Shown: positions 7,500 through 62,011 of the stretch, piece after piece | Layout of the letters: every line of letters begins with the position of its first letter | Numbering within the stretch: the stretch's first letter is position 1 | Sequence record: NC_019405.1 | Strand: one strand, 5' to 3' | DNA: 64,000 nucleotides | Made by a program: the position numbers and the translations under genes | Notes under the pieces: model-generated | What the model was told of the DNA's origin: nothing | Database searches by the model: none | What the model saw: the letters and a program-made list of their open reading frames with translations, nothing else

Positions 7500-7532
7500 A
7501 CACTACGCTTTGGGTTCTTGTATTGTCAACAC
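7500..7532 (-). promoter_or_regulatory. phage sigma70-type promoter driving the NAD operon
   Basis: GTGTTGACA-18-TAGTGT in the intergenic gap; no ACGACAA leader. Confidence 0.7.
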
Positions 7533-7533
7533 A

Positions 7534-8007
7534 TCACTTCAGGAGCTTGAGGACGGGGGCGTGATATTTGAACCCCGCCTCGCTGATCGGCCCCACGCCC
7601 ACGAAGGTGATGGTCGGCTTGTCGAACACCGTGCGGCCCGCGTCGAGGACGAGGGTCGCGCCGGCATGGTCGCGGAACCGCTCATAGAGGGCTTCCAACT
7701 CGGCGCTGGTCCCGGTGTGGAGCGCGATCTTCACGGCCGACTGCGAGTAGCGGTACTGCCGCGCGATCCTGGGGAACCGCTCCATGGCGTCCCACCACGC
7801 ATGCAGGTAGGCGTGGCCGGCCTGAGCCGCGAGCTTGCCCAGGTTGAGGGATTTTTCGTCCGGCTTGCGGCGGTTCTTTGCCACGGTCATCGCGTCGAGC
7901 GCGTCCTGGCTCACGATGGCGTAGAGGCGCAGTTCGGCCTCGGGCTTGCCAGCGAAGACCGCCATCAGTGAGTCCCAGGCGTTGCGCCATGCGTCGATCA
8001 GGTTCAT
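7534..8007 (-). CDS. pth2: peptidyl-tRNA hydrolase type 2 (Pth2-like)
   Basis: GKLAAQAGHA, VKIAL, L..DAGRTVF..PT.T.VGVGP motifs. Confidence 0.85.
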   Translation of the reverse strand: MNLIDAWRNAWDSLMAVFAGKPEAELRLYAIVSQDALDAMTVAKNRRKPDEKSLNLGKLAAQAGHAYLHAWWDAMERFPRIARQYRYSQSAVKIALHTGTSAELEALYERFRDHAGATLVLDAGRTVFDKPTITFVGVGPISEAGFKYHAPVLKLLK

Positions 8008-8447
8008 GAAAAGCGGCTTTCGTAGGAGGCCTCCAGGGCGATTGCCGCGTCAAAGGCGACGTCGATGAGGTCCTCGTGTATGAGAACATCGAAGGAGCGA
8101 TCGACCCGTAGGGCGAACTGGGCTTCCATCGAACGGTTGAAGGCCAGGAGGTCCTTGTGGAGCCCCGCCATGCGGTCCAGGAGTTTGATCGCGTAGACGT
8201 CCGGCCCGAAGGTCCCTCGCGTCTGATGCAGACGCTTCTTGACGTCGTTGATCGTCTCCCAGGACTTGACCTTCAAGTCCTCCATGAGGTCGGCCTGCTG
8301 CTCGACCCGGATCAGGTGGCGCAGCAGGCGCCGGAGCCGGGCCTGGATTTGATCAGGCGGGGCCGACGGCGGAGGAGCGCGACACTCCTCCGCCTCGGTG
8401 GCGATCATCTGCCGCGCCCGGTTGACGCAGTCGAGGATCGAAGCCAT
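8004..8447 (-). CDS. hypothetical protein (147 aa)
   Basis: Coupled to neighbours, helical. Confidence 0.7.
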   Translation of the reverse strand: MASILDCVNRARQMIATEAEECRAPPPSAPPDQIQARLRRLLRHLIRVEQQADLMEDLKVKSWETINDVKKRLHQTRGTFGPDVYAIKLLDRMAGLHKDLLAFNRSMEAQFALRVDRSFDVLIHEDLIDVAFDAAIALEASYESRFS

Positions 8448-8872
8448 CAGCCCTCGGCGGCCGGCGCTTCCGGCTCAGCGGTGGTCTTGCCCTTGCCTTT
8501 GCTCGCCGGCGCGGCCTGGACTTCTTCCGCCACCGGCTCGGCGATGGGCGCGGGAGCTTCCATCACCGGTTCGGCGTCCGAAGCCGCCTCGACCGGCGTG
8601 TAGTCGGCCTCGAACGCGGCCGGCTTCAGGATGGCGATCTCGTAGGCGTCCTCGCCGCGCGGGATGCGGACGATATAGTCGTCCTGGGTCGCCGAGGCGA
8701 TCTGGCCGTTGATCGGGACCAGGAGCTTGCCGACGGCGTCCTTGCCGACGTGCATGGTCCCCATGGCGGTGTAGCCCGAGTGCTGGGTCAGCCACGCCGG
8801 CAGGTCTTCCAGGCGCTGGAAGCTGTACTGGACGGCGTCCACGGTCACCGGTTGGCGGATATACTGGGTCAT
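8447..8872 (-). CDS. hypothetical phage protein with acidic/Ala-Pro tail
   Basis: Y.RQPVTVDAVQY N-terminus, DDYIVR; GGAG SD. Confidence 0.75.
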   Translation of the reverse strand: MTQYIRQPVTVDAVQYSFQRLEDLPAWLTQHSGYTAMGTMHVGKDAVGKLLVPINGQIASATQDDYIVRIPRGEDAYEIAILKPAAFEADYTPVEAASDAEPVMEAPAPIAEPVAEEVQAAPASKGKGKTTAEPEAPAAEG

Positions 8873-9471
8873 GCGGTCTCCTGCTGGAGGTTAGCCGGCG
8901 CCGGGATGGCGTCGGAAAGGGCTTGCTCGACCAGGACCAGGATGTCCATGACGAGCTTGGGATTGAGGTCGGGCTCGGTGAGCGCGGCGGCCAGGGCGTT
9001 GATCCGGAACCACGTCGGGTCGGCGTGCGGGATCAGATTGAGATTGTGCAGGTGCAGCAGCGTCGAGCCGTGAGAGGCGGAGCGCTCCGAAAGCTCGCGC
9101 AGCACGCGGGCGCCAACGAGTTGGTCGGCCAGGACCTTGATCACGCTGCCCGAGGGGGCCAGGAGCAGACGCATCCAGTCGCCGTTCGGATCGTCGGCTT
9201 GGCGCAGGTCCGGATGGTCCAGCGTCTTGCCCCAGATCACCTCGTGCGCCTTGGCGGCCAGCGAGCGGCGGCGGCGGGCGAGGTCTTCGGCGTCCTTGGC
9301 GGCGCGCAGGCTGGACAGCGTCGTGGCGATCAACACCGAGGGAAAGAGCGCGACGACGAAGAACGCGGCGCGCTCAAGCGGCGAGGCGTGTGAAGCCACG
9401 ATATTCATGGCCGTGCCAATCAGCACCGTCGGATAGATCAAGCCGCCGTGGCGCTGGATGAACGAGATCAT
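8869..9471 (-). CDS. hypothetical membrane protein (200 aa)
   Basis: Two N-terminal hydrophobic segments; first gene after a promoter cassette. Confidence 0.75.
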   Translation of the reverse strand: MISFIQRHGGLIYPTVLIGTAMNIVASHASPLERAAFFVVALFPSVLIATTLSSLRAAKDAEDLARRRRSLAAKAHEVIWGKTLDHPDLRQADDPNGDWMRLLLAPSGSVIKVLADQLVGARVLRELSERSASHGSTLLHLHNLNLIPHADPTWFRINALAAALTEPDLNPKLVMDILVLVEQALSDAIPAPANLQQETA

Positions 9472-9509
9472 GAAAAGGGCCTCCGGCGTTGTCGTCGGAG
9501 GCCCTTCTA
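9469..9509 (-). repeat. 41-bp hairpin leader element, near-identical to 59504-59545 (inverted)
   Basis: TAGAAGGGCCTCCGACGACAACGCCGGAGGCCCTTTTCATG; the two copies differ by one T. Confidence 0.95.
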
Positions 9510-9545
9510 GCGAGTCGGTGTCAGGCTGTCAACACATGTCAGCCA
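9487..9545 (-). promoter_or_regulatory. phage promoter cassette (upstream-operator type)
   Basis: TGGCT-GACAT-GTGTTGACA-17-TAGAAG then GACGACAACG; GANTC in the spacer. Confidence 0.85.
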
Positions 9546-9548
9546 GGA

Positions 9549-10160
9549 TCAAGCGGCGTTCGTCACCAGGGTTTCCAGACGGTCAAAGCCCAGGTCGAGG
9601 CGGCCCCACATCGACGAGGGCGTATGCGGCTTGACCACCTCGGTGAACCGCGCGCGCTCCTTCAGATACATGCGGGCCATGGGGATGTTCGGCTGGCCGG
9701 TCGCCGGGTCCTTGATCGAGGCCTCGACATTGGCGATCCGGTCGGCGAGCTTGAGGATGCAGGCCTTGGGGTGCTCGCCCAGCTTGCGATAGATGTCCTC
9801 GTTGCGGGCCTTGCGGTTGGGGCCAATGCCTGAGACCGCCCAGACCAGCGCCGCGACGTCCTCGCCGAACTTTTCCTTGATCATCTCCAGCCGCTGCTCG
9901 GGCGTCATGTCGAGATGGGTGTCCTCGATCACGTCGTGCAGCTTGGCGGCGGCCGTCCAGGTAAAGCCCAGGAAGCCGTAGTCGTCGAGGATGCGCTCGA
10001 CCTTCTGGAGATGGTAGAGATAGGGCTGGCCGGCGTACTGCTGGTCCCCGTGGGCGGCGATGGCGAACTCCGTCGGGTCTTCCTGGCGCAGCGGCGCGCC
10101 CGGCGCCGTCGGGAGGCCGGTCAGGATGGAGGCGAGTTGGTCGAGCGAGGCGTCAGACAT
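9549..10160 (-). CDS. HD-domain small alarmone hydrolase (SpoT/Mesh1-like)
   Basis: AH..Q.Y...PY..H, LHDVIEDT, FG.DVA.LV, KLADR..N motifs; no synthetase domain. Confidence 0.85.
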   Translation of the reverse strand: MSDASLDQLASILTGLPTAPGAPLRQEDPTEFAIAAHGDQQYAGQPYLYHLQKVERILDDYGFLGFTWTAAAKLHDVIEDTHLDMTPEQRLEMIKEKFGEDVAALVWAVSGIGPNRKARNEDIYRKLGEHPKACILKLADRIANVEASIKDPATGQPNIPMARMYLKERARFTEVVKPHTPSSMWGRLDLGFDRLETLVTNAA

Positions 10161-12643: not shown

Positions 12644-13876
12644 CTAGCCCTTCACGCAGAGGACTTGCTTGAGGGTGTGGACGATGTCCACGAGGTCCTT
12701 CTGGGCCTCCATGACCGCGTCGATGTCCTTGTAGGCCATCGGGATTTCGTCGATCACGCCAGCGTCCTTGCGGCACTCCACGCCCTCGGTGGCCTTGATC
12801 TGGTCCTCCAGGGTGAAGGTCGCCTTGGCCTGGGTCCGCGACATCGTCCGGCCCGCGCCGTGCGAGCACGAGCAGAACGAGTCCGCATTGCCCTTGCCGC
12901 GCACGATGTAGGACTTGGCCCCCATCGAGCCGGGGATGATCCCGAACTGGTCCTTCTGCGCCGACACCGCGCCCTTGCGGGTCACGAAGACCCACTCGTC
13001 GAAGTGGAATTCCTTCTGGACGTAGTTGTGGTGGCAGTTCACCGCTTCCTTGTCCGTCTTGAACGGCGGCAGGCCCGACGCCCGCATGGCCTCCAGGACC
13101 CGGACCATCATCATCTCGCGGTTGATCCGCGCGAAGTCCTGGCCCCAGGCGACGGCTTCCACGTAGTCGTGGAACTCCGGCTCGCCTTCGCAGAGCCAAG
13201 CAAGGTCCTTGTCCAGCGGCTTGCGCCCGTCACGACGCAGCATCATCTCCTTGGCCTTCTCGATGAAGATGCGGCCGATGGTGTTGCCGACGCCGCGCGA
13301 GCCCGAGTGGAGCATCACCCAGACGCGCTGGTCCTCGTCGAGGCAGACCTCGATGAAGTGGTTGCCGCCGCCCAGGGTGCCCAGTTGGACCACGCTGTTG
13401 GCGTTCTTCAGCGCCGGGTACTTCTCGCAGAGCTTGTCGAACCGCGCCTCCAGGCCCGAATCGACCCACTTGCGCAGGATCGAGTTGGGGATGCCGCTGC
13501 GCCCGTTCCAGCCGCCCGACGGACCCGGCCCGCCGTGCGGGACGGCGTGCTCGATCAGCGAGCGAAGCTTGGACAGGCTGTCGGGAAGGTCCGACGCGGT
13601 CAGGCTGGTGCGGACCGCCATCATGCCGCAGCCGATGTCGACGCCGACGGCGGCCGGGATGATCGCGCCCTTGGTCGGGATCACCGAGCCCACGGTCGAG
13701 CCGATGCCCATGTGGACATCCGGCATCAGGGCGACATGCGAGTGAATGAAGGGCAGGGCCGCGAGGTTGTGGGCCTGGACCTGAGCCGGTTGCTCGAAGT
13801 TCACGCCGCGAACCCAGGCCTTGATCACCCCGCCATTCCAGCCGTTGATCTCTTCGTAATGGGTCTCGGCGGACAC
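12644..13876 (-). CDS. rtcB: RtcB RNA ligase
   Basis: MPDVH.G, GVDIGCG, GTLGGGNHF.E, HSGSRG, HHNY, RKGA, IPGSMG, SCSHGAGR, DE.P.AYK motifs. Confidence 0.97.
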   Translation of the reverse strand: MSAETHYEEINGWNGGVIKAWVRGVNFEQPAQVQAHNLAALPFIHSHVALMPDVHMGIGSTVGSVIPTKGAIIPAAVGVDIGCGMMAVRTSLTASDLPDSLSKLRSLIEHAVPHGGPGPSGGWNGRSGIPNSILRKWVDSGLEARFDKLCEKYPALKNANSVVQLGTLGGGNHFIEVCLDEDQRVWVMLHSGSRGVGNTIGRIFIEKAKEMMLRRDGRKPLDKDLAWLCEGEPEFHDYVEAVAWGQDFARINREMMMVRVLEAMRASGLPPFKTDKEAVNCHHNYVQKEFHFDEWVFVTRKGAVSAQKDQFGIIPGSMGAKSYIVRGKGNADSFCSCSHGAGRTMSRTQAKATFTLEDQIKATEGVECRKDAGVIDEIPMAYKDIDAVMEAQKDLVDIVHTLKQVLCVKG

Positions 13877-13893
13877 GGCGGGCTCCTTCTGTG

Positions 13894-13942
13894 GTGTCGT
13901 GATTTACGACTTTTGACCATGCTCCTCGGACGGTGTCAACAC
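13894..13942 (-). promoter_or_regulatory. degenerate promoter cassette for rtcB, inside the upstream ORF
   Basis: GTGTTGACA, weak -10, ACGACAC leader, AAGGAG SD. Confidence 0.5.
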
Positions 13943-14119
13943 TTCTTCAACGGCGGTGATCTGAATTTGCAGCAGACTGGCCGCCGGGTGGCTGGGCGGA
14001 AGAAGGGCCTCGGCCTGTTTCATGGCGTCCAGGGTGTCTTCCAGCGCAGCGCGGAAGGTGTTGCGCTGCTCGGTGGTGGCGCGGACGGCGGAGGGAAATT
14101 CGAAGATCATGGGGATCAC
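13904..14119 (-). CDS. hypothetical protein (71 aa; start may be 14110)
   Basis: Good codon bias, between terminator and rtcB. Confidence 0.65.
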   Translation of the reverse strand: MIPMIFEFPSAVRATTEQRNTFRAALEDTLDAMKQAEALLPPSHPAASLLQIQITAVEEVLTPSEEHGQKS

Positions 14120-16110: not shown

Positions 16111-16397
16111 CAGGCCGCGAGCCCGCGCTGCTTCAAGGCGACGATCTGCTCGATCTCCTTGAGGATGTGGTCCGACAGGCGGTCGGTCCGTTCCTTGATG
16201 CCGGCGGGGACGCCGATCTTGCACTGACCGATCTCGTGCAGGCGGTCGGAGACGGCCTTCAGGTCGATCAGGGTGTCGCTGATCAGCACCTCGGCGAGGC
16301 CGATGGCCTCGGTCTGGATGGCGGCGATCCGCTGGGCGGTGGTCTGCGCCGATTGGCCCGCGACGAGGGCCAGGGCGGCGGTGTTCTTCTGGGTCAT
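16110..16397 (-). CDS. hypothetical protein (95 aa)
   Basis: First gene after a promoter cassette; AAGGAG SD. Confidence 0.8.
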   Translation of the reverse strand: MTQKNTAALALVAGQSAQTTAQRIAAIQTEAIGLAEVLISDTLIDLKAVSDRLHEIGQCKIGVPAGIKERTDRLSDHILKEIEQIVALKQRGLAA

Positions 16398-16410
16398 GGA
16401 GGTCTCCTTC

Positions 16411-16459
16411 GTTGTCGTCGGGCGTGACTTCTAGTTGGGTTCCTGGAGGCTGTCAACAC
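16411..16459 (-). promoter_or_regulatory. phage promoter cassette, inside the 3' end of the upstream ORF
   Basis: GTGTTGACA-17-TAGAAG then CGACGACAACG. Confidence 0.85.
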
Positions 16460-16721
16460 TTTCGCTCACCGGCGCGGCGCCGTAGTGCGCGACCAGGACA
16501 AGCCGCGCGCCGCAGGCGACCAGCGCGCCGCGCGCGTCGTAGATCAGCCGTCCGGCCTCCTCGCCGTTCTTGTCCAGGATGATGGCCTCCCTGGCGTAGG
16601 TCGGCTTGCCGCTCTTGCCCCGCTGGATGCGGATCGGAGGATCATCCGTGCCGCGCTTGGTGTTGCGGTCGATGACCTGCCGGTTGATGTTGAGGACGCA
16701 GGTCTTGCGGGTGATCTTCAT
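16431..16721 (-). CDS. hypothetical phage protein (96 aa)
   Basis: INRQVIDRN.K.G...PPI..., CGAR motif; ATG 16721. Confidence 0.75.
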   Translation of the reverse strand: MKITRKTCVLNINRQVIDRNTKRGTDDPPIRIQRGKSGKPTYAREAIILDKNGEEAGRLIYDARGALVACGARLVLVAHYGAAPVSESVDSLQEPN

Positions 16722-17026: not shown

Positions 17027-18444
17027 ATCAGCGCTCCTTGGCTCGGATCGGCCGGCGCGTAGACGGCGCGGTTGATGGTGGTCTCCGGCTCGCCCGAGCG
17101 CTTGTTGGCGCCGTGACGCTTGATCGTGGCCCGGATGGCGTAGCGCTTGCCGGCCTCGGGACGGTACTTGCCGGTGTGGAAGTTCACCACCGCCGAGCCG
17201 TCGTCGCAGCGGATGGCCACGATGCAGGTCGTCTCGCCGAAGTCGTTGGTGTAGAGGTTGGTCCGCACGACCTCGCCCACGAAGTCCACGCGCTGGCCCT
17301 CGGCGGCGTCGAGGTGCTTGGCAGGCGGGCGCTGGGGAGCGTCGGCCTTCTTGCGGGCGTCCTCCTCGCGCTCCAGGACGCGGCCGACCGACAGACCGAC
17401 AGCGGCGACGATCACCCCGATGCGCTTGACCAGGACGAAATCTTCCTGGGCGAGCACCATCTTGATGTTCTCGTGGAACGGATTGCCCGGCTTCAGCGAG
17501 CGGATGTAGTCGGTGAAGCCCTCGCGGTCGAATTCCGGCTCGAAGCCCTTGTAGGAGTCGATGATCTCCTGGTTGCGCTTGCGCTCGTAGTCCGACAGGC
17601 CATAGCCCCGGTTGCCGAACATCAGCAGGCCGACATGCTTGCGCGAGTCTTCCTTGCTGTAGCCGCCGAGCCGGCGCGCCACGCGGTACGAGGTCCGCAG
17701 GAGTTCGCCCAGATCGACGTACTCCTCGCCCTTGCGCCAGCCGCCCGGATCACCCTTGAAGTTGTTCAGGTCATCCCAGAACGACAGCATGCGGACCGGA
17801 TCGGCCCCCATATAGGCTTTCAGGCACGAGGCCCCGATCATCTTGATCCCGTCGGCGGTCTCGCAGACGAAGGTGTGTTTGCGGCGCTGGTTGACGCCGC
17901 AGTGGGCGCACTCGCCAGCGTGTACACGCATCCCTTCCACGACGTCGTTGGCGGTCTTGTCGACCAGCTTGAGGTAGTGCCCCGTCTTCTCGGCGGCTTC
18001 GTAGATGCCCAGGACGCGGCCCTTCTCGCCGACCATCGGCGGAACCGACAGGGTGATCTCGATGCGGCGCACCACCATGGCCTCGTCGCTCAGATAGGGC
18101 GAGGGAATGTCGACCACCTTGCGCTCCAGGACCTCCAGGGTCTGGGCGCCGTGGGCGGCCCGCTTCTGGAGCTTGGCCAGCAGGCGCATGAAGCGTTCCT
18201 CGACGGCGAAGCCCATCATGAAGGTCAGGACGGCTTGGCCGTCGCGCACGCCTTCCTGGGCCTCCCACATGGCGGTTCGGTGAGCCTCGCGCTCCTGCTC
18301 GTCCTCGAAGATCGACACGCCCCTGGCGGTCACGACCTCGACGCCGTCGACCAGCACGCTGGCCTGATCGGCGACCGTCTCGGGACGCTCACCGTAGGTT
18401 TCCAGCATGTAGTCCTGGTAGCTGCCTTCGAATTCGCCAAACAT
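17023..18444 (-). CDS. 473-aa protein with Zn-ribbon-like motif and probable C-terminal OB fold
   Basis: CAHCGVNQRR...IGASCL; C-terminal beta-rich GQRVDFVGEVVR...YAIRATIKRH...ETTINRA. Confidence 0.8.
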   Translation of the reverse strand: MFGEFEGSYQDYMLETYGERPETVADQASVLVDGVEVVTARGVSIFEDEQEREAHRTAMWEAQEGVRDGQAVLTFMMGFAVEERFMRLLAKLQKRAAHGAQTLEVLERKVVDIPSPYLSDEAMVVRRIEITLSVPPMVGEKGRVLGIYEAAEKTGHYLKLVDKTANDVVEGMRVHAGECAHCGVNQRRKHTFVCETADGIKMIGASCLKAYMGADPVRMLSFWDDLNNFKGDPGGWRKGEEYVDLGELLRTSYRVARRLGGYSKEDSRKHVGLLMFGNRGYGLSDYERKRNQEIIDSYKGFEPEFDREGFTDYIRSLKPGNPFHENIKMVLAQEDFVLVKRIGVIVAAVGLSVGRVLEREEDARKKADAPQRPPAKHLDAAEGQRVDFVGEVVRTNLYTNDFGETTCIVAIRCDDGSAVVNFHTGKYRPEAGKRYAIRATIKRHGANKRSGEPETTINRAVYAPADPSQGALI

Positions 18445-18458
18445 GATCGGCTCCTCTC

Positions 18459-18518
18459 GCTGTCGTGAGGGAGCTTGTACGGACTCATGCCGATGCTGTC
18501 AACACTCTAACGCCAACA
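18459..18518 (-). promoter_or_regulatory. phage promoter cassette (upstream-operator type)
   Basis: TGTTGGCG-TTAGA-GTGTTGACA-17-TACAAG then ACGACAGCG; GANTC in the spacer. Confidence 0.85.
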
Positions 18519-18526
18519 AAGAATCG

Positions 18527-20981: not shown

Positions 20982-21999
20982 CGGCGACCTCCTCGGCCTC
21001 TTCCTCGCTCGGGGCGATCGTCGAGCCCGAGTATTCCTGAAGGTGATCGACCGCCTTCTGGGCCAGCGACGCGGCGGTGAAGATGAAGCGCTTGTCGCCC
21101 TTCAGGACCTTCAGCCAGGAGGCGACATAGGAGGCGTGATCCTCACGGACTTCCGGGGTCAACCCAAGAATGGCGCAGAGGAAGGCCGAGCCCAGTTCGG
21201 CGACCAGTTCCTCGGCGGCGTAGGCCTCGTCCCCGAAGCGCTTGCCGAACTCGCGGTTCAGGCGGTCCTCGCGACCGGTCCAGTGGACGAACTCGTGGCC
21301 GAGGGTGGCGTAGTAGCTCTCCTCGTCGCGGAAGGCGTCGAACTGGGGCATCTGGATGAAGTCCAGGTGCGGCGAGAAGAAGGCCCGATGGCCGCCGTGG
21401 CGCACCTCGGCGCCCGTGGCGGCGAAGAACTTCTCGACCGCCGCGTTGCGCTCCAGGACCCGCTTGGCTTCCTCGGCGGGCGTCGCCGGGGCCGGGGCGG
21501 GCTTCTGGTAGAAGCGCTCGGGCAGGCCGTCGATCTGCTCGACGTTGAACACCAGATAGGACTTCAGGAACGGGATCATCCGCTCGACGTCCTTGCCGTT
21601 GGCGTCCTTCTCGGTCTTCTTGAACTTCGAGGCGTAGACGATCAGTTCGGACTTCTCGCCCTTGCGGACCTGACCACCCAGGTCCCTGGCTTGGTTGTAG
21701 GTCATCCAGGTCGGGTTGGTGTAGCCGCGCTCCTGGGCGGCGGCCCACAGGAGGACCACGTTGATCCCGGTGTAGCGCTGGCCGGTCACCCGGCGGGGAT
21801 AGATCGCCATGCCGGCCGAGGCGCCGCCGGGAGCCGACCACGGCTTCAACCAGGGACGCACGCCAGCGTCGAGGGCGGTGATGATCTTGTCGGTGATCTT
21901 CTGATAGAGGTCGACCTTGACGGTTTCGGTCGAGGCCTTGCCGGTCTCCTTGGTGGAGCGCTTGGCCGGCTTCTTCTTGGCGGCGGTGGTCTTGGTCAT
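20968..21999 (-). CDS. ardC: ArdC antirestriction protein (ssDNA-binding plus zincin domain)
   Basis: ITDKII..L..GV.PW.KPW, Y.GINV..LW, W.TY.QA..LGG.VRKGEK, VFN.EQ, HEFVHWTG...RL.R, YA.EEL.AE. Confidence 0.95.
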   Translation of the reverse strand: MTKTTAAKKKPAKRSTKETGKASTETVKVDLYQKITDKIITALDAGVRPWLKPWSAPGGASAGMAIYPRRVTGQRYTGINVVLLWAAAQERGYTNPTWMTYNQARDLGGQVRKGEKSELIVYASKFKKTEKDANGKDVERMIPFLKSYLVFNVEQIDGLPERFYQKPAPAPATPAEEAKRVLERNAAVEKFFAATGAEVRHGGHRAFFSPHLDFIQMPQFDAFRDEESYYATLGHEFVHWTGREDRLNREFGKRFGDEAYAAEELVAELGSAFLCAILGLTPEVREDHASYVASWLKVLKGDKRFIFTAASLAQKAVDHLQEYSGSTIAPSEEEAEEVADAAA

Positions 22000-22010
22000 C
22001 AGGGCCTCCT

Positions 22011-22067
22011 CGTTGTCGTCGAGGGGTTCTAGCCGGCGACCGCGACCTTGTCAACACTCTCGCGCCA
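22011..22067 (-). promoter_or_regulatory. phage promoter cassette driving ardC
   Basis: TGGCG-CGAGA-GTGTTGACA-17-TAGAAC then CGACGACAACG and GAGGAGG SD. Confidence 0.9.
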
Positions 22068-45595: not shown

Positions 45596-45598
45596 GCG

Positions 45599-47098: not shown

Positions 47099-47101
47099 TC
47101 C

Positions 47102-47158: not shown

Positions 47159-47169
47159 CAGGAGGGACC

Positions 47170-47526
47170 ATGCCGCTCTACGACTTTCCGACCGGACCGA
47201 CCACGATGGAGGACATCGAGGCGTTCGTCGCCGGCGCCCAGGCGGTGGTGACCGCCCAACTGGCCAAGGCCTTTCCCGGCGTGTCCGCGCCGGTCCTGGA
47301 GATCGCGCCGGTTCACCCGAGCAGCCAGTTCGCCAAGATCGTCGCGGTCGACGCCAGCCAGCGCTCGGCCTGGGCGTTCGTCCGACTGGAGAACGGCCTG
47401 ATCTATAAGCCCTCGTCGTGGAAGGTGCCAGCCAAGCATGCGCGCGGCACGATCCATACCGCCGCGCACGGCGCCGAGTACGTCGACTGGACCGGCCCCC
47501 GCTATGTGAAGGACCTGCGTCGATGA
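47170..47526 (+). CDS. hypothetical phage protein (118 aa)
   Basis: FAKIV...FV....G.IYKP.SWK.PAK.ARG.I motif. Confidence 0.8.
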   Translation: MPLYDFPTGPTTMEDIEAFVAGAQAVVTAQLAKAFPGVSAPVLEIAPVHPSSQFAKIVAVDASQRSAWAFVRLENGLIYKPSSWKVPAKHARGTIHTAAHGAEYVDWTGPRYVKDLRR

Positions 47527-54443: not shown

Positions 54444-54447
54444 ATTT

Positions 54448-54507
54448 TGTTGGCGTTAGAACGTTGACAGCCTCGGCGTGATGTCATAAAAGCCTCCTCG
54501 ACGACAA
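54448..54507 (+). promoter_or_regulatory. phage promoter cassette with SD-masking hairpin
   Basis: TGTTGGCG-TTAGA-ACGTTGACA-17-TAAAAG; GCCTCCTCG-ACGACAA-CGAGGAGGC. Confidence 0.88.
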
Positions 54508-54520
54508 CGAGGAGGCCCAC

Positions 54521-54940
54521 ATGGCTTACGCAATTCCGGACCTGAGCACGTTCACGTTCCACGATCCCAAGGTCGAACGTTTCGCCAAGGCGATGATCTC
54601 GACGATCGAGACCGCCCAGACCATCCTCACGGCCTTCGCCAACGATCTCGCCGACAATCCTCTTCAGGCGTTCGAGCATAGCTACGGCGCCAAGATGGCC
54701 GCCGCCCACAGGGACGTCGCCAAGGGGCTGCTCAACGAAGTCCTCGACGCGCTGCTGCACGGTCAGGACAAGACCTGGGCCTACATCGGCCAGGACCTGC
54801 GCGAGCGGCTGATGTATCGCGTGATCTACGCGGCCTCGAACCCGCCGCGCTCGACCAACGTCGAGGGCAACGACATGGCCCGCTTCGTCCTGCGCGCCGA
54901 GGCCGACATGCTCGACCGCATGACCAAGAGCCGCTTCTGA
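54521..54940 (+). CDS. hypothetical helical protein (139 aa)
   Basis: First gene after a promoter. Confidence 0.8.
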   Translation: MAYAIPDLSTFTFHDPKVERFAKAMISTIETAQTILTAFANDLADNPLQAFEHSYGAKMAAAHRDVAKGLLNEVLDALLHGQDKTWAYIGQDLRERLMYRVIYAASNPPRSTNVEGNDMARFVLRAEADMLDRMTKSRF

Positions 54941-55634: not shown

Positions 55635-55852
55635 CGTCGCAGACCCAGAGAACCCTCATCCTGTCCGGCGTGGGCTTCTTCATCGGCTTCATGCTGGTGT
55701 TTGGCTTTATGAGCGTCTCGCAGGCCTCCTACAACCGAGGCTATCGAGACGCCAAGGCCGACACGCGCCGGGACGAGCCCGCATGCTTTACCTCCCAGCG
55801 CTGCTACCTGGGCCAGGACGCCGACGGGCGGTGGTTCATCGAGCCGAAATAG
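55631..55852 (+). CDS. small membrane protein (73 aa)
   Basis: N-terminal TM helix; Y..GY motif. Confidence 0.7.
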   Translation: MTSQTQRTLILSGVGFFIGFMLVFGFMSVSQASYNRGYRDAKADTRRDEPACFTSQRCYLGQDADGRWFIEPK

Positions 55853-55853
55853 T

Positions 55854-55912
55854 TGGCGTTCAAGTGTTGCCAAAGCTGATCTGATCAGCTAGAACCCTCG
55901 CCGACGACAACG
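55854..55912 (+). promoter_or_regulatory. phage promoter cassette with palindromic spacer
   Basis: TGGCG-TTCAA-GTGTTGCCA-17-TAGAAC then CGACGACAACG. Confidence 0.8.
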
Positions 55913-55931
55913 CAAGAGGAGCCCCCGAGCC

Positions 55932-56312
55932 GTGGAACACCTGAACCGCGCCATCGACCCCCGCATCGGCTACCTGAACTCGGGCGTCTACTACGCCTTC
56001 GTCGACGGCTACGACAAGCCCGAGACGCGGGGCACGCTAGAAGAGGTCGAGATCGCCCTGGGCCTGCGCGCTGCGAAGCCGGCTCCGACCAAGCGCATCG
56101 TCGCCGCCCAGCCGGCCGTCAAGACCTACTCGGTCCACATGCGGTTCGAATATCCGGGCTGGAGCTACGTCGACGGCATCACCTACGACGGTATGCTCGG
56201 CCGCACGAAGGCCGAAGCGATCCGCAACGCCCGCGCCGAGGCCTTTGCCGACGGTCACCTCGGCGTCGGCCAGGGCCGGGTGTGGTTCAAGGCCACGGAA
56301 GAGGACGCCTAG
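55932..56312 (+). CDS. hypothetical protein (126 aa)
   Basis: GTG with GAGGAG SD. Confidence 0.75.
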   Translation: MEHLNRAIDPRIGYLNSGVYYAFVDGYDKPETRGTLEEVEIALGLRAAKPAPTKRIVAAQPAVKTYSVHMRFEYPGWSYVDGITYDGMLGRTKAEAIRNARAEAFADGHLGVGQGRVWFKATEEDA

Positions 56313-56865: not shown

Positions 56866-56881
56866 TCGCCGCCAGCCCGGC

Positions 56882-56923
56882 TGGCTTCAGTGTGTTGACG
56901 GCGCGTCGATCGCCCGCTAAGAA
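56882..56923 (+). promoter_or_regulatory. phage promoter (upstream-operator type, no ACGACAA leader)
   Basis: TGGCT-TCAGT-GTGTTGACG-17-TAAGAA. Confidence 0.75.
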
Positions 56924-56981
56924 GGGCTGACGGTCACGCTCTGGCTGCATGAATTTTCAAGAGACAAAGGGCCTTAAGTCC

Positions 56982-59012
56982 ATGGATTTCCACGTCTTTA
57001 AGACGGCCGTCGCCAAGCAGTGGGCCGCGATGACCAAGGATGACGCGACCCTGTTCCGCGTCGACGTCGACAAGGACCTCCTGTGGTCGACCTACCTGAA
57101 GGCGTTCCCGGCTGGGACCGATCCGATCTTCCGCGAGCGCTCCGAGCACGACTGCTCGTGCTGCCGCAACTTCATCCGCAACGCCGGCGACGCCGTGGCG
57201 GTGGTCAACGGCCAGATCGTGACGATCTGGGATGGCAAGATCGAGGGCGAGCCGGCCTATCAGCAGGTCTCCCAGACCCTGGCGGCGCTGGTCCGCTCGC
57301 GCCCGGTGCGCGACATCTTCCTGCACGACCAGAAGACCATCGGGACCGACAAGAACGTCGAGACCATGCTGGGCGGCGACGTCACCTGGAACCACTTCTT
57401 CGTCAATGTCCCCTCGCGCTTCGTCAAGAAGGGCAAGGACATCCCGACCGCGCTCCACCTCCCGCGCACGGCGCAGGAAACGCTCCTGCGCGCCGTCAAT
57501 GAGATCACCGACGAGGCGATCGACACGGTGCTGGACCTGATCGCCCAGAACGCGCTCTATCGCGGCGCCGAGCACAAGGCGGCGGTGGTGGCGTTCCAGA
57601 AGGCCAAGAAGACCTTCGAGGGCCTGTCGGCCGCCGACAAGGCGCTGAAGGCTTGGGTCAACGTCGCCAGCGGCGAACTCTGGGGCTCGGTCTCGGGCAT
57701 CCGGAGCACGGTGATCGGCTCGCTGCTGGTCGACCTGTCGGCCGATGTCGACCTGGAGGAGGCGGTCAAGAAGTTCGAGGCCAAGGTCGCGCCGTACAAT
57801 TACAAGCGCACGACCGCCCTGGTGACCAAGAAGCAGATCGAGAACGCCAAGAAGACGATCTCCGACCTGGGCCTGACCTCGGCCCTGGAGCGGCGCTACG
57901 CCGTCCTCAAGGACGTGTCGATCAACGACGTGCTGTTCGCCGACCGCGACGCCAAGTCGGTGATGAACGACGTCTTCGACGATCTGGCGGCCGACGTCGC
58001 CGAGAAGACCAAGTCCTATGATAAGGTCGAGGAGGTGTCGATCGACAAGTTCCTGGCCGACATCCTCCCGAGGGTGACGAGCGTCGAGGCCCTGGTCGAG
58101 AACCGCCTGACGAGCAATTTCGTCAGCCTGATCGCGCCGGTCGATCCGACCGCCGGCTCCCTCTTCAAGTGGGGGAATAACTTCTCCTGGTCCTATGCCG
58201 GGGAGGTGGCGGACTCGATCAAGGCCCGCGTCAAGGCGGCCGGCGGCAACGTCACCGGCGATCTCTGCTGCCGTCTGGCGTGGTTCAACTATGACGACCT
58301 CGACTTCCACATGAAGGAGCCGGGCGGCAACCTGATCTACTTCCGCCAGAAGTCCTCGCCCTACACGGGCGGGCGCCTCGACGTCGACATGAACGCCGGC
58401 GGGGGCCATACCCGCGAGCCGGTCGAGAACATCTTCTACGGCGACCGCCGGACGATGAAGGAAGGCGTCTACGAACTGATGGTCCATCAGTACAGCAAGC
58501 GCGAGTCCAGCAACGTCGGCTTCGAGGTGGAGATCGACTACCTGGGCTCGGTCACCCGCTACGCCTACACCACGGCCCTGCGCCAGGAGCAGGTCGTCAA
58601 GGTGGCGCAGTTCAAGTACAGCCACGCGCGCGGCATCGAGTTCATCTCCTCGCTCCCGGCCTCGTCGGCGAGCAAGGACGTCTGGGGCGTGAAGACCGAG
58701 ACCTTCCGCAGGGTCAACGTCATCATGCTCTCGCCCAACCACTGGGAAGGCGAGCCGGGCGTGGGGAACAAGCACTGGTTCTTCATGCTGGACGGAGGCG
58801 TCAACGAGGACGGCGCCCGTGGCTTCTACAACGAGTTCCTGAAGGATAGCCTCACGCCCCACCGTCGCGTCTTCGAGATGCTGGGGTCCAAGCTGAAGCC
58901 CGCGCCGGCGACTGAACAACTCTCCGGCCTGGGCTTCTCCTCGACCAAGCGCGACGAACTCGTCGTGCGCGTCAAGGGGGCCTTCACGCGTACCCTCAAG
59001 ATCAAATTCTAA
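56982..59012 (+). CDS. large phage protein (676 aa; start 56949 possible) with Cys cluster and YfaP/DUF2135-like segment
   Basis: HDCSCCRNF; W.NYDDLDFHM.EP.G...GG.LDVDMNAG...PVENI. Confidence 0.85.
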   Translation: MDFHVFKTAVAKQWAAMTKDDATLFRVDVDKDLLWSTYLKAFPAGTDPIFRERSEHDCSCCRNFIRNAGDAVAVVNGQIVTIWDGKIEGEPAYQQVSQTLAALVRSRPVRDIFLHDQKTIGTDKNVETMLGGDVTWNHFFVNVPSRFVKKGKDIPTALHLPRTAQETLLRAVNEITDEAIDTVLDLIAQNALYRGAEHKAAVVAFQKAKKTFEGLSAADKALKAWVNVASGELWGSVSGIRSTVIGSLLVDLSADVDLEEAVKKFEAKVAPYNYKRTTALVTKKQIENAKKTISDLGLTSALERRYAVLKDVSINDVLFADRDAKSVMNDVFDDLAADVAEKTKSYDKVEEVSIDKFLADILPRVTSVEALVENRLTSNFVSLIAPVDPTAGSLFKWGNNFSWSYAGEVADSIKARVKAAGGNVTGDLCCRLAWFNYDDLDFHMKEPGGNLIYFRQKSSPYTGGRLDVDMNAGGGHTREPVENIFYGDRRTMKEGVYELMVHQYSKRESSNVGFEVEIDYLGSVTRYAYTTALRQEQVVKVAQFKYSHARGIEFISSLPASSASKDVWGVKTETFRRVNVIMLSPNHWEGEPGVGNKHWFFMLDGGVNEDGARGFYNEFLKDSLTPHRRVFEMLGSKLKPAPATEQLSGLGFSSTKRDELVVRVKGAFTRTLKIKF

Positions 59013-59454: not shown

Positions 59455-59480
59455 GCCTTCGGGCGGGCTGACATAGGCGC

Positions 59481-59527
59481 TTGACAACACTCTCGCGCCA
59501 ACATAGAAGGGCCTCCGACGACAACGC
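59481..59527 (+). promoter_or_regulatory. phage promoter cassette (spacer-operator type)
   Basis: TTGACA-ACACTCTCGCGCCAACA-TAGAAG then CGACGACAACG. Confidence 0.92.
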
Positions 59528-59541
59528 CGGAGGCCCTTTTT
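59507..59541 (+). terminator. terminator-like hairpin overlapping the start site and SD of the cassette
   Basis: 11-bp perfect stem AAGGGCCTCCG/CGGAGGCCCTT, loop ACGACAACGC, T-tract. Confidence 0.6.
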
Positions 59542-59542
59542 C

Positions 59543-59995
59543 ATGCCTTATCCGATCCAGATCGATCCCATCATCCTCGCCCTCGGCAGCGCCTGGAAGG
59601 CGGCCGACGCCTTGGCGCTCGACCTGCGCCACAAGTGGTCCTGTGTCACCAATGACCGCAGCGCCTACGAGGCCTGGAAGATCGCCGACGACGTCCGCAA
59701 CGCCGCCTTCAAGGCCATGACCTACGCCCTGCCCGATCCGGGCAGGCCGGTGTTCATCAGCCCGACCGACTGGCTGGCCGACAAGGACAACTGGCGCACC
59801 GAGTACGCGCCCGTCCGGGTCTGGAATGGCGCGGACCACTACAAGGACTGGTACCCGTGCCTGGGCCACTACGAGTTCAACGTTCGCACCGGCGAGCGCT
59901 TCTACCGTGGGGCCGAGATGTTCGACCGCTGCGTCGAGGAGGCCGCCCGGCGCAATGCCGAGTACGCGGCATACTACGCCAAGCAGGCCGCATGA
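59543..59995 (+). CDS. hypothetical protein (150 aa)
   Basis: GGAGG SD inside the hairpin. Confidence 0.8.
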   Translation: MPYPIQIDPIILALGSAWKAADALALDLRHKWSCVTNDRSAYEAWKIADDVRNAAFKAMTYALPDPGRPVFISPTDWLADKDNWRTEYAPVRVWNGADHYKDWYPCLGHYEFNVRTGERFYRGAEMFDRCVEEAARRNAEYAAYYAKQAA

Positions 59996-60198: not shown

Positions 60199-60440
60199 AA
60201 TCCGTCCAGGTCCAGCGCGGCAAGACCACCTACCACGTCACCTTCGACGAGGCTGGGCAGGTCTCGTCGATCATCGGCGTCGCGGTGGTCGGCAAGGTCC
60301 CGCGCTACAAGGGCGGCACGCGCCGCGTCACCTATTCCGGCGCCGGCAACGGCTGGCACGCCAGCGCCGGCCGTCCCATCCCCATGCAGCTTCGCCCGAT
60401 CGCGGACGAGGCGTTCCAGATCAAGGAGGCCCAGACTTGA
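60195..60440 (+). CDS. hypothetical protein (81 aa)
   Basis: Coupled ORF. Confidence 0.7.
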   Translation: MKSVQVQRGKTTYHVTFDEAGQVSSIIGVAVVGKVPRYKGGTRRVTYSGAGNGWHASAGRPIPMQLRPIADEAFQIKEAQT

Positions 60441-61234
60441 GCGAGCTTTCCGCCCCGCACCAGCGGATCGTCAACAACGTGATCGACACGCTGGACCAAC
60501 TCGTCTTTCGCAACGGCAAGCCGCCGATGAGCGGCGAGATGCCCGGCAACATCGCCGACCTCGACAGCATCGCCGACAACATTTCGGCCGTCCTGGCGGC
60601 GCTTCCGAGCAACGCCGATCTGCTGACGAAGTATCTCTTCATCGCGCAAGGGATGTTCCGTTCGCTGGTCAATTACGAGACGGTCTCGCCGGACGAACTG
60701 CGCCGGCTGGCGCATGGCCTGCGCCCGTTCCACGCGATCTCCTCGCGCCGAGGGCTCTCGCAGGGCGCCCAGCAGACCCTCGACTTCATGGTTGAGGGCC
60801 TGCGCTTCCTGGCGGAGAACGACTGCGAGCCCCCGTCAGGCGGCGAGCAGATGTACAACCGCATCTCGCTCCTGAGCCGCACCGGCTCGGACGCCAAGCG
60901 CCTGCGCCAGGAGGCCCCCAGCCTCGCCGTGGTGATCACCCAGGTCGAGGCCCTGTTCATCGACCTGTGGCACTATCGCCCCATCGCCCTGAAGGACGTC
61001 AAGGACGCCTTGGAGGCCCTGGCGCCGTTCCGCACCCCGGTCATCCCGATCGTCGCGACGCCCGCGCCGGCGCCAAAGCCCGCCAGCCGCCCGGTCTCAA
61101 AGGCCGAGGCCCTGGAACTGCTCGACCACATCGCGGTCACGGCCTCCACTCTGCGGATGCAGATGGGGCCGGCCAACGCCGACATCACGCTGGAGCGGAT
61201 CAAGACGCTCGAAGCCTTCGTCAATCAGCAATAG
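60437..61234 (+). CDS. hypothetical helical protein (265 aa)
   Basis: TTG with AAGGAGG SD. Confidence 0.75.
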   Translation: MSELSAPHQRIVNNVIDTLDQLVFRNGKPPMSGEMPGNIADLDSIADNISAVLAALPSNADLLTKYLFIAQGMFRSLVNYETVSPDELRRLAHGLRPFHAISSRRGLSQGAQQTLDFMVEGLRFLAENDCEPPSGGEQMYNRISLLSRTGSDAKRLRQEAPSLAVVITQVEALFIDLWHYRPIALKDVKDALEALAPFRTPVIPIVATPAPAPKPASRPVSKAEALELLDHIAVTASTLRMQMGPANADITLERIKTLEAFVNQQ

Positions 61235-61243
61235 GGGACCAGC

Positions 61244-61693
61244 ATGACCACTCCGCTCTGTCTGAACCCGGACGGCGCCGACTTCCAGGCCCAGGCCGTC
61301 CTCGCCCTGGTCCGCTTCATCATCGGCGACGACTTCGAGCCGTCCTGGAACGCCCAGAAGCAGGTCTTCGAGGGCGAGCCCCAGGTCGCCCGCTTCGATA
61401 GCCCTCGCTGCCACGGCTACGTGATCTGGCTGGTCGATCACCGCGCGGCGGCGTTCGGCGGCGAGGCCCGGCAGATCAACATCACCATCTACCAGCACGG
61501 GGTCAGCGACGAGATCGTGATCAACGCGTGGCTGGGCGAGACCAACCGCTGGATGGTTCCGACCTATCACGACATGCCCGGCCTGGACCTGATGTACAAA
61601 CACGTCACCTTCCGCTGCCTGGACGTCAAGTCGGCCGCCTACTTCGTCACCGACCTGATGCAGGAGTTCTGGGTCCAGGGGACCGGCGCGTGA
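61244..61693 (+). CDS. hypothetical protein (149 aa)
   Basis: Codon bias; GA.FQAQAVLA.VR motif. Confidence 0.75.
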   Translation: MTTPLCLNPDGADFQAQAVLALVRFIIGDDFEPSWNAQKQVFEGEPQVARFDSPRCHGYVIWLVDHRAAAFGGEARQINITIYQHGVSDEIVINAWLGETNRWMVPTYHDMPGLDLMYKHVTFRCLDVKSAAYFVTDLMQEFWVQGTGA

Positions 61694-61992
61694 GCGACCA
61701 CGACGCCTGCCTGACCAACTGGGTCCTCTGTGATGCGCCCGGCGGCGGATTGGTGGTGATCGGCGAGATCATGGCCGACAAGCGCGGGCGATGGCCGGAC
61801 GGGCGGCTCATCCACACCTCGCTCCTCCAGGACAAGGCCGAGGCGGTGGCGCCGGGCGCGGTGATCGCCACGCTCAACTCCCGCTACATCCTGGGTCGCA
61901 AGGCCAAGGAGATCACCGTCCGACACTTCGTCGGGGCGATGCTCGCCCGCGTCGCGATCAGGCCGCTTGACAACACTCTCGCGCCAACATAG
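61690..61992 (+). CDS. hypothetical protein (100 aa)
   Basis: G.I..D.RGRWPDG..IHTS motif; its stop TAG is the promoter -10. Confidence 0.75.
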   Translation: MSDHDACLTNWVLCDAPGGGLVVIGEIMADKRGRWPDGRLIHTSLLQDKAEAVAPGAVIATLNSRYILGRKAKEITVRHFVGAMLARVAIRPLDNTLAPT

Positions 61993-62011
61993 AAGGGTCC
62001 TCGACGACAAC
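61967..62011 (+). promoter_or_regulatory. phage promoter cassette (spacer-operator type)
   Basis: TTGACA-ACACTCTCGCGCCAACA-TAGAAG then CGACGACAACG. Confidence 0.92.

Follow-up and report, generated by a model that had tools for sequence, protein, structure and literature searches.

Along the genome of Caulobacter phage phiCbK, the standard phage of the Caulobacter cell-cycle model, some 20 operons appear to begin with the same few nucleotides, which raises the question of what such a fixed beginning is for. The stretch in question (the window) is a 64-kb segment, 100% identical to NC_019405.1, 124001-188000 (window coordinate = genome coordinate - 124000). Its GC content is 66%, and its genes, small and for the most part unnamed, form two arms that diverge from a point near 36.2 kb. 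Along both arms lie ~20 co-oriented copies of the promoter TGGCG-N5-GTGTTGACA-N17/18-TAGAAG, most of them followed by a leader, GACGACAAC, placed just before the first ribosome-binding site. In our reading, to which we give a probability of roughly 0.55, these cassettes are the phiCbK early promoters, read by the host sigma-73 RNA polymerase, and the leader serves as the address tag by which a small RNA encoded by the phage acts in trans to shut the early operons off together.

The link between small RNA and leader appears to be new, as no description of it is present in the literature searched. Likewise, no description of phiCbK promoters, operon structure or cassette repeats was found there, including the genome paper, in which the word 'promoter' appears once, and the accessible part of the RNA-seq paper. 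Searches with motif strings returned primers only, and searches for phiCbK promoters or small RNAs returned nothing relevant, neither the cassette nor the RNA being described in what they retrieved.

Architecture of the promoter-leader cassettes

The repetition is far above chance. In the window, GTGTTGACR occurs 17 times against 0.51 expected, a number reached by 0 of 100 shuffles; exact GACGACAAC occurs 13 times (0.69 expected) and the composite TTGACA-N17/18-TA-N10-14-ACGACA 14 times (0.00 expected). An earlier note, made from the letters of the window alone, had listed 21 such positions and had taken them for promoters pointing with the genes. Indeed, a -35-like box is present at every one of them, all copies run with the genes, the distance between copies is 1.0-7.3 kb, and the repeats have the architecture of promoters. 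In its 5' part, the aligned unit comprises a T-rich/TGGCG element, N5, GTGTTGACA, a spacer of 17 bp (sometimes 18) and gCTAGAAG; its 3' part comprises a GC-rich discriminator of 6-9 nucleotides (nt; mode 8), GACGACAAC, 0-3 nt, the Shine-Dalgarno (SD) sequence GGAGG, 5-8 nt and the start codon.

The -35 box is exact TTGACA or TTGACG in 19 of the 21 window copies, as in housekeeping promoters. The spacer is 17 bp in 16 copies and 18 bp in three, i.e., 17 +/- 1 bp, and the -10, TA(G)AA(G/C) with GC just before it, is of the host type. Caulobacter sigma-73 promoters have the consensus TTGACGS ... GCTANAWC, and these housekeeping promoters share with the cassettes the -35 TTGACA, the 17-bp spacer and the GC before a TAnAAC/G -10. 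The phage cassettes, however, are nearer to the ideal than typical host sigma-73 promoters and possess an extra GTG before the -35, the TGGCG/T-rich element and the fixed leader. A Caulobacter consensus written with S, W and N letters, with conserved GC at -16/-15, has been published (PMC1175088), and with its existence confirmed, the cassette boxes appear to fit the host pattern. A scanner tuned to the E. coli TATAAT found none of the cassettes because the last base of their -10 is not T. A whole-genome scan on the promoter boxes alone yielded ~24 copies in phiCbK, located at 113-197 kb and additionally at 10.5 kb and 52.9 kb, and ~22 in its relative CcrRogue; the cassette list thus provides ~24 early transcription units with predicted start sites.

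The upstream element, a T-tract followed by TGGCG(Y)(K)AGA, lies at approximately -60 to -40 (e.g., 18505-18520, 22057-22072, 38669-38685 and 54447-54463). The whole element is kept from phiCbK to a Brevundimonas phage (Bajun, L072) and is also present at the promoter of the small RNA described below. This element resembles an UP-element or may be a regulator site. A sigma-54 reading of TGGCG-N5-GTGTTG was discarded on inspection, the GG-to-GC spacing being unsuitable.

The leader at the 5' end

Exact GACGACAAC is found 18 times in the phiCbK genome: 16 copies lie in the sense orientation behind early promoters, one lies within a gene, and one, in the antisense orientation, is the seed of the small RNA. 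Of the 20 genomic copies of ACGACAAC, 16 are in cassettes. Among promoters called independently of the leader in phiCbK and CcrRogue, about 36 of 45 carry it, 7-9 nt after the -10, and 28 have exact GACGACAAC. No leader occurs in the phiCbK genome at a ribosome-binding site without a promoter. Its restriction to sites behind promoters, with no copy at any internal ribosome-binding site, ties the leader to the 5' end, and it behaves as the 5'-end signal that the earlier note had suspected.

The placement is equally constant. ACGACA starts 12-15 nt past the first T of the -10, as previously noted, which is 6-9 nt (mode 8) past its last base, and in most copies the gap before the SD is 0-3 nt. 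By the usual rule, transcription starts ~7-8 nt past the -10, at a pyrimidine-purine step. It should therefore start at the G or A of cGACGACAAC, which is consistent with the previous placement of ACGACAA at the predicted +1 to +3. The predicted early 5' untranslated region (UTR) should be ~20 nt long and U-free and should read GACGACAAC-(0-3 nt)-GGAGG.

It might be supposed that the leader, as an unstructured A/C-rich 5' end, is simply a translation enhancer that opens the SD or recruits S1 or the 30S subunit. It does lie directly 5' of a consensus SD, is U-free and shows almost no self-pairing. However, these operons contain many internal ribosome-binding sites, at none of which it occurs, and avoiding structure needs no strict 9-mer. 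Moreover, the leader is lineage-specific within a single host (see below), so that neither the invariant 9-mer nor the different leaders of phiCbK and phage Colossus are explained; an enhancer, which the earlier note had named first among its options, is improbable.

The uniformity of the cassettes could also be the product of copying or gene conversion if they were a mobile promoter module that has spread recently, comparable to the promoter-stem-loop cassettes found in T4-type phages; ACGACAA would then have no specific function. Many copies are situated among small accessory genes, some with adjacent terminator hairpins, and three copies (45596, 59478 and 61964) have an identical spacer. 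Nonetheless, spacers and flanks differ fully between most paralogues and between phiCbK and Rogue orthologues, whereas the -35, the -10 and the 9-mer are constant; in the orthologous cassettes of Rogue and CcrBL10, spacers and flanks are unrelated and the 9-mer is identical. Constant boxes and a constant 9-mer amid divergent spacers indicate selection rather than recent copying, and the mobile module is exceedingly improbable.

A candidate small RNA antisense to the leader

The sole antisense copy of GACGACAAC in the genome lies outside the window, after the tRNA cluster and before a PhoH-like gene, within the following unit (coordinates of NC_019405.1):

52,918-53,047 (+): whole unit (L004:2918-3047)
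52,921-52,949 (+): boxes of the small-RNA promoter, which comprises a TGGCG element, exact GTGTTGACA at 52,918, N17 and TAAAAC
52,957-53,047 (+): predicted small RNA, ~90 nt
53,000-53,008 (+): antisense copy of GACGACAAC, the seed
53,010-53,047 (+): annotated terminator

With a promoter, no open reading frame (ORF) and an intrinsic terminator, the locus has the features of an independent non-coding unit. No coding sequence is annotated there in 26 records, no credible ORF is present (the sole spanning ORF begins inside the -35 box), and no Rfam family corresponds to the RNA. The predicted fold consists of a 5' hairpin, unpaired GUUGUCGUCA and the terminator hairpin (dG -53.5, z -5.7). The predicted probability of being unpaired is 0.74-0.91 for the seed in four phiCbK-type phages compared with 0.22-0.31 for the remainder of the RNA; thus, a stable fold is combined with an accessible seed. 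BL57, CcrBL10 and Rogue retain the locus at 76-82% identity, CGTTGTCGTCAG being invariant, and across these three phages the first hairpin shows a compensated change from GGACC/GGUCC to GGGCC/GGCCC. In four Dolichocephalovirinae lineages, a putative, unannotated small-RNA gene closes the tRNA cluster and precedes the PhoH-like gene. This position recalls the small stable RNAs without assigned function in the tRNA region of T4.

The exposed linker of the RNA, GCUUCUGCGUUGUCGUCAGG, complements the leader and, with its CUUCU, also the SD. Over 22 nt, allowing for one mismatch, one wobble and one bulge, its complementarity extends across leader and SD into the bases that come next in a typical early 5' UTR. 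Because duplex prediction with a 30-nt probe that included hairpin-stem bases was swamped by the GC-rich background, the genome was scanned instead for exact complements. At least 10 contiguous nt are matched at 16 sites, 14 of which are cassette leaders; the longest perfect match, 12 nt, is to the cassette at 55850..55934. The other two sites are the start region of tgrL and one site inside a gene. When the RNA of each lineage was paired with its own 5' UTRs, the predicted duplexes had energies of -19.7 to -27.4 kcal/mol (z -5.8 to -7.7), a level that none of 500 shuffled linkers reached. Complementarity at the ribosome-binding region is thus beyond chance, and the small-RNA promoter is ~60-135 kb away from the leaders it would address.

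The first codons of the early regulator gene tgrL (ATGGCTGACGACAAG; window 31222-31237 (-)) contain a 10-nt perfect complement to the linker, which may be a coincidence, since a few such matches are expected by chance. According to the accessible part of the RNA-seq paper (PMC10688885), tgrL is a highly expressed early gene. A published cloning primer places it at window 30860-31237 (-) and therefore inside the operon headed by the cassette at 32552.

Covariation of leader and linker across lineages

If the leader is read by an RNA, the two should change together, and this is what the lineages show. The leader/linker pairs are GACGACAAC/GUUGUCGUC in phiCbK and Rogue, TGACGATCA/UGAUCGUCA in Colossus and GACGACG/CGUCGUC in the Brevundimonas phages, so that the pairings differ as CAAC:GUUG, UCA:UGA and CG:CG, respectively. 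Colossus is especially informative: it infects the same host, C. crescentus, and has its own early-promoter family, with the leader TGACGATCA or close variants. A syntenic RNA was predicted beforehand and was found to carry the leader complement CUGAUCGUCAAG with the anti-SD sequence CCUCC just before it. The unit (L069:19436-19583) lies between the last tRNA and PhoH and comprises a promoter, a 5' domain, the linker CCUCCUGAUCGUCAAG and a terminator. Two leader positions differ between the phages (C in phiCbK is U in Colossus, and A is C), and each is matched by a change at the seed position opposite it (G in phiCbK is A in Colossus, and U is G). The Brevundimonas phages Bajun (L071:2393-2545) and Kabachok (L073:1570-1700 (-)) also possess the small-RNA unit, with linkers CCGUCGUCA (...CCGUCGUCAG/AAG), and GACGACG is enriched among their early leaders. 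In Kabachok, the linker is the antisense of TTGACGACG-GAGGACC, and the actual leaders read TTGACGACGAAGGAGGAC. In each lineage, the linker reads as antisense to an entire early 5' UTR of that lineage. For Colossus leaders, the Colossus RNA is the best partner (-22.9 vs. -15.6 to -19.8 for the others), and phiCbK-type leaders likewise prefer their own RNA. The early arms of distant phages were located by synteny, as tblastn with the phage GcrA-like protein did not locate them; Mesorhizobium phage Cp1R7A-A1 shows no tRNA/PhoH synteny.

These data bear on the suggestion that the signal acts only on DNA and RNA polymerase, i.e., that the discriminator and initial transcribed sequence tune start choice, open-complex lifetime and promoter escape with no RNA partner. 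The motif keeps a set distance of 7-9 nt from the -10 and occurs only at promoters, the GACGA core occupies an equal position in four lineages, and the initial transcribed region is U-free. Parallels are provided by rRNA P1, with its 8-nt GC-rich discriminator and purine start, and by the downstream region of T5 early promoters. Nevertheless, promoters of the same class without a leader exist, and phiCbK and Colossus, which use one host polymerase, differ past GACGA, a difference mirrored in their own small RNAs. With one host for both phages, the part of the leader that is specific to each lineage cannot be put down to constraint by host polymerase or ribosome. A signal at this level only is therefore unlikely, but for the GACGA core, common to the lineages, such an effect may well come on top, and the core may serve start-site choice. 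The complementarity of GACGACA to the universal UGUCGUC of 16S rRNA (helix 34) was also considered and is an unlikely constraint, since Colossus alters those positions in the same host.

Hairpins and other signals at the leader

Many copies have a discriminator (CCTCG, CCTCCTCG or GGGCCTCCG) that complements the SD side, and RNA reading through from upstream could, according to folding predictions, form a hairpin with the loop ACGACAA. In the cassette at 54447..54523, discriminator CCTCCTCG perfectly complements CGAGGAGG to give an 8-bp hairpin with this loop (dG -17.5). Copies 9527 and 59478 have a 9-bp GC stem (dG -22.6 kcal/mol) followed by TTTT(T), as in intrinsic terminators. In the cassette at 9469..9549, the discriminator and SD form the hairpin at ~9505-9472, which is terminator-like in read-through RNA. 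RefSeq lists a rho-independent terminator at the hairpin of 59509-59536, which makes promoter and terminator overlap; a simple terminator scanner missed this hairpin because its loop is 10 nt. At both places (59504-59540 (+) and 9472-9509 (-)), the discriminator is the 5' arm of a strong terminator hairpin and the SD lies within the 3' arm. Read-through RNA would be predicted to terminate there or to mask the SD, whereas transcripts begun inside the hairpin would not. Native flanks fold slightly better than chimeric flanks (-9.0 vs. -7.9 kcal/mol, p ~0.002). As the main signal, the discriminator/loop/SD hairpin was rejected: the marginal gain is driven by the terminator-like copies, and the 5' arm is upstream of the predicted start. 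The read-through hairpin may be a secondary feature that insulates transcription units.

A hairpin at the head of each operon recalls antitermination, and the earlier note had listed a nut/boxA-like site and the target of a phage RNA-binding protein among its explanations. The motif marks the start of every long early operon, and the heptaloop ACGACAA of read-through RNA contains GACAA, which we take to be the loop sequence of P22 boxB. In contrast to a lambda-type nut site, no boxA-like sequence is visible in the aligned leaders, and transcripts from the cassettes' own promoters would lack the 5' arm of the sole hairpin because the discriminator precedes the predicted start. Within the arms, terminator predictions are almost absent, and no N- or Q-like gene was recognised, without a systematic search for one. 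Furthermore, the partner that tracks the leader in evolution is a phage-encoded small RNA, not a protein. A nut/put-like signal or RNA-binding-protein target is accordingly very improbable.

The same flanks permit a further explanation, namely an operator over +1, with the partial dyad CTCG-N7-CGAG, at which a phage or host DNA-binding repressor would effect early shut-off. Such a site would overlap the start point; the CCTCG/CGAGG flanks are complementary in many copies, several helix-turn-helix proteins are encoded in the early arms, and early phiCbK transcripts fall after 15 min, according to the accessible part of the RNA-seq paper (PMC10688885). Nonetheless, the conserved core lacks symmetry, conservation is lowest in the flanks that do have it, and the 3' flank is the SD; an operator also leaves unexplained the perfect antisense copy in a promoter-terminator unit and its covariation. 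We regard this explanation as quite improbable.

Proposed mechanism

It appears that the small RNA probably represses early translation, as judged from the pairing potential of the sequences. The early promoters of phiCbK, a virulent phage, would be read by the host sigma-73 RNA polymerase, and the invariant leader would be a pairing site that lets one small RNA address the first ribosome-binding site of each early operon. The stable RNA would accumulate and pair with the first-gene 5' UTR of some 20 early operons, and this pairing would block 30S binding. Loss of translation-transcription coupling, or decay triggered by RNase, would then spread the effect along each operon, and the early operons would be silenced together by an RNA-based early-to-middle timer. 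A block of 30S binding is favoured because an anti-SD stretch adjoins the seed in all lineages. A delayed shut-off is possible because the small RNA has an early-type promoter and a strong structure, and it would match the published drop of early transcripts. Cofactors such as Hfq, RNase E or Rho may take part. The opposite effect, protection of the 5' end, is also possible.

Several observations weigh against repression by a shared small RNA. With regard to the RNA, RNAalifold offers an alternative fold in which part of the seed pairs with the 5' GCGGCG, and on the four close small-RNA sequences covariation was scarce and this fold competed. Only the anti-SD stretch indicates which way the effect runs (repression vs. 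5'-end protection). Moreover, a single small-RNA promoter faces ~24 target promoters, so that repression needs a stable or catalytic RNA, and several early-type promoters have no leader. With regard to pairing, the phiCbK seed was located by searching for the leader complement, and a single 9-mer match in 431 kb (both strands) is insignificant alone; the weight is therefore placed on context and on covariation in the other lineages. There, UCGUC, which pairs with GACGA, is common to all lineages, and only 2-4 positions truly co-vary. The Brevundimonas leaders are heterogeneous and discriminate weakly between own and other RNAs, Bajun leaders pairing slightly better with the phiCbK linker. Finally, in the Bertelyvirus CcrSC (NC_048048.2, 225001-275000, L075), GCGAGAAA-N-CTG precedes TTGACA and the leader is TCAAC(A/C), with no GACGA; no matching antisense RNA was seen in CcrSC, including at the syntenic spot.

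An extension of the proposed mechanism, which we consider distinctly unlikely, is that the small RNA of a phage that is resident or arrives first also silences the early operons of superinfecting relatives with the same tag and thereby defines phage-specific 'immunity groups'. If so, the diversity of tags (GACGACAAC, TGACGATCA and GACGACG) within one host would reflect an arms race of competing jumbo phages.

The copies in the window

The earlier note gave minus-strand copies by the low coordinate of GTGTTGACA and plus-strand copies by the first T of TTGACA. The promoters, with strand and parts, are as follows:

7489..7546 (-): early-type promoter without leader; -35 7529-7524, -10 TAGTGT 7505-7500, ATG 7491
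9469..9549 (-): cassette with TGGC element; -35 9532-9527, -10 TAGAAG 9509-9504, GACGACAAC 9496-9488, SD, ATG 9471
13874..13956 (-): weak copy; exact GTGTTGACA 13942-13934, poor -10, variant ACGACAC 13900-13894, GTG 13876 (RtcB-like ligase gene)
16395..16473 (-): cassette; -35 16456-16451, -10 16433-16428, leader 16419-16411, ATG 16397
18442..18519 (-): cassette with TTGGCGTTAGA element; -35 18502-18497, -10 TACAAG 18479-18474, variant CACGACAGC 18467-18459, ATG 18444
21997..22071 (-): cassette; -35 22054-22049, -10 TAGAAC 22031-22026, leader 22020-22012, ATG 21999 (anti-restriction gene)
23445..23520 (-): cassette, variant GTGTTGACG; -10 23480-23475, leader AACGACACC 23468-23460, GTG 23447
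26660..26737 (-): cassette, spacer 18; -35 26720-26715, -10 TAGTGT 26696-26691, leader 26683-26675, ATG 26662
28172..28249 (-): cassette; -35 28232-28227, -10 28209-28204, leader 28195-28187, ATG 28174
32495..32574 (-): cassette with displaced variant ACGACAG 32515-32509; -35 32557-32552, -10 TAGAGC 32534-32529, GTG 32497
36155..36208 (-): leftward divergent promoter without leader; TTGTCA 36208-36203, N17, TAGGGT 36185-36180, ATG 36157
36198..36295 (+): rightward divergent promoter; -35 36234-36239, -10 TAGGGG 36257-36262, leader 36270-36278, ATG 36293
38669..38747 (+): cassette; -35 38686-38691, -10 38709-38714, leader GACGACAGC 38722-38730, TTG 38745
41803..41880 (+): cassette; -35 41820-41825, -10 TACACC 41843-41848, leader 41856-41864, ATG 41878
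45596..45658 (+): inverted-subtype cassette; -35 45599-45604, -10 45622-45627, leader 45635-45643, ATG 45656
47098..47172 (+): cassette, spacer 18; -35 47115-47120, -10 47139-47144, leader 47151-47159, ATG 47170
54447..54523 (+): cassette with TTGGCGTTAGA element; -35 54464-54469, -10 TAAAAG 54487-54492, leader 54500-54508, ATG 54521
55850..55934 (+): cassette; -35 TTGCCA 55867-55872, -10 55890-55895, leader 55903-55911, GTG 55932
56878..56984 (+): early-type promoter without leader, GTGTTGACG; -10 TAAGAA 56918-56923, 58-nt unrelated leader, ATG 56982
59478..59545 (+): inverted-subtype cassette; -35 59481-59486, -10 59504-59509, leader 59517-59525, ATG 59543
61964..62062 (+): inverted-subtype cassette, long leader; -35 61967-61972, -10 61990-61995, leader 62003-62011, ATG 62060

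The claim that most copies carry the motif is correct, the leader being absent at 7524 (-), 56892 (+) and 36202 (-), and some entries need qualification. At 13934 (-), the -35 box is exact and the -10 (TCAAAA) is poor. Copies 45596, 54461, 55864, 59478 and 61964 have the boxes but 1-3 mismatches in the 9-mer of the -35 box. The latitude allowed in ACGACA(A/G/C) is used at 13934, 18497, 23498, 32552 and 38683, which bear ACGACAC or ACGACAG; in CACGACAGC, the change of A8 to G retains a G-U pair with the small RNA. The entry 'minus 36202' corresponds to a real minus-strand TTGTCA (36208-36203) in the palindrome GTGTTGACAAC, followed by N17-TAGGGT, but it has no leader, and the exact box at 36198-36206 is on the plus strand, a partial duplicate without a -10 ahead of the rightward divergent promoter.

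Two copies may give rise to leaderless mRNAs. At 7489-7532 (-), ATG 7491 is only 8 nt past the -10, and the annotated GTG start at 7503 falls within the -10 box. In the promoter-like copy at 1295-1337 (-), ACGACAG makes codons 2-3 (ATGACGACAGC at 1298). The cassette at 23445..23520 lies within the 3'-terminal part of the HNH gene that precedes it; the one at 32495..32574, the head of the tgrL operon, has a terminator hairpin directly upstream. In the cassette at 61964, an extra 10-bp AT-rich hairpin (TGTCCGAAAT...ATTTCGGACA) is located between tag and SD (62012-62059).

An inverted promoter subtype is seen at 45599-45627, 59481-59509 and 61967-61995 (+) and at 36180-36208 (-). A 21-bp element, TTGGCGCGAGAGTGTTG(A/T)CAA, occurs both ways round the palindromic -35 box; as it is used in both orientations, it fills the spacer in these copies instead of lying upstream. 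Indeed, the spacer ACACTCTCGCGCCAACA of cassette 45596 is the reverse complement of the usual upstream element. The inverted element may be the binding site of a further factor or a trace of inversion events.

A second promoter family

A second sharp family, GTCGTGAATCTTGACA-N17-TAnnnT/TTAAC, has ~24 copies at 19.4-115.7 kb and 198-200 kb of the genome and none in the window. Its copies lie in the structural, lysis, tRNA and replication modules and are probably middle/late promoters with an upstream activator box. Control by GcrA/CcrM was considered and rejected: the CcrM site GAATC in GTCGTGAATCTTGACA reads AGATTCA/TGAATCT, at about -40, a context ranked lowest for GcrA (PMC4647560), and no high-ranked YGAKTCK is found near -20 or between +2 and +30.

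Comparison with known systems

If the proposed mechanism is correct, a virulent jumbo phage uses a single antisense RNA, directed at a common 5' tag, to set the timing of its entire early programme, a role so far given to proteins (T4 RegA/RegB) or to single-operon immunity RNAs (P1 c4, P4 CI). The small-RNA/leader pairs would be naturally orthogonal tools for GC-rich alphaproteobacteria, and there would be reason to seek like tags in other large phages and to re-examine the small stable RNAs of phage tRNA clusters.

Some likenesses concern the promoter and leader. T5 early promoters, with their downstream region, and the promoter-stem-loop cassettes of T4 are, like those of phiCbK, strong host-polymerase families conserved beyond the hexamers and repeated in accessory regions. 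However, their conserved parts are assigned to promoter clearance or recombination, whereas that of phiCbK is assigned here to pairing with a phage RNA. The start-associated sequence (SAS) of cluster K mycobacteriophages is similarly an asymmetric conserved motif that includes the SD and is repeated before many phage starts, but it is not tied to promoters and is unrelated in sequence to the phiCbK leader; we know of no assigned function or antisense partner for it.

Other likenesses concern the regulator. T4 RegA is a translational repressor and RegB an endoribonuclease that cuts GGAG in early mRNAs; the logic is the same, i.e., an early product acts post-transcriptionally on the ribosome-binding regions of many early mRNAs, but the T4 effectors are proteins, whereas the predicted phiCbK effector is an RNA that derives its specificity from a tag beside the SD. 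With Hfq-type small RNAs (RyhB, GcvB), the phiCbK RNA shares a 5' hairpin, a single-stranded seed, an intrinsic terminator and pairing over 9-12 nt at multiple 5' UTR/SD sites. It differs in that its site is near-identical, purpose-built and at the extreme 5' end, and in that RNA and targets belong to one viral genome.

In architecture the phiCbK RNA is thus of the Hfq-type kind; in logic it is closest to T4 RegA/RegB and to the c4 RNA of P1/P7 (icd-ant mRNA) and the CI RNA of P4 (seqA/seqC), the last two being likewise trans-acting phage small RNAs that use short complementarity to repeated sites at or near the ribosome-binding site. Pairing of c4 or CI blocks translation and ends downstream transcription, and in P1 and P7 sequence differences of RNA and target set specificity groups. 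Nonetheless, c4 (summarised in PMC12197685) and CI belong to temperate elements, are processed from the transcript that they control and serve immunity through one operon, whereas the phiCbK RNA comes from a virulent phage, has its own promoter and terminator and would target the 5' ends of ~20 separate early operons. Thus, with its own transcription unit, its distant multi-operon targets and its virulent source, the phiCbK RNA would stand outside the c4/CI type.

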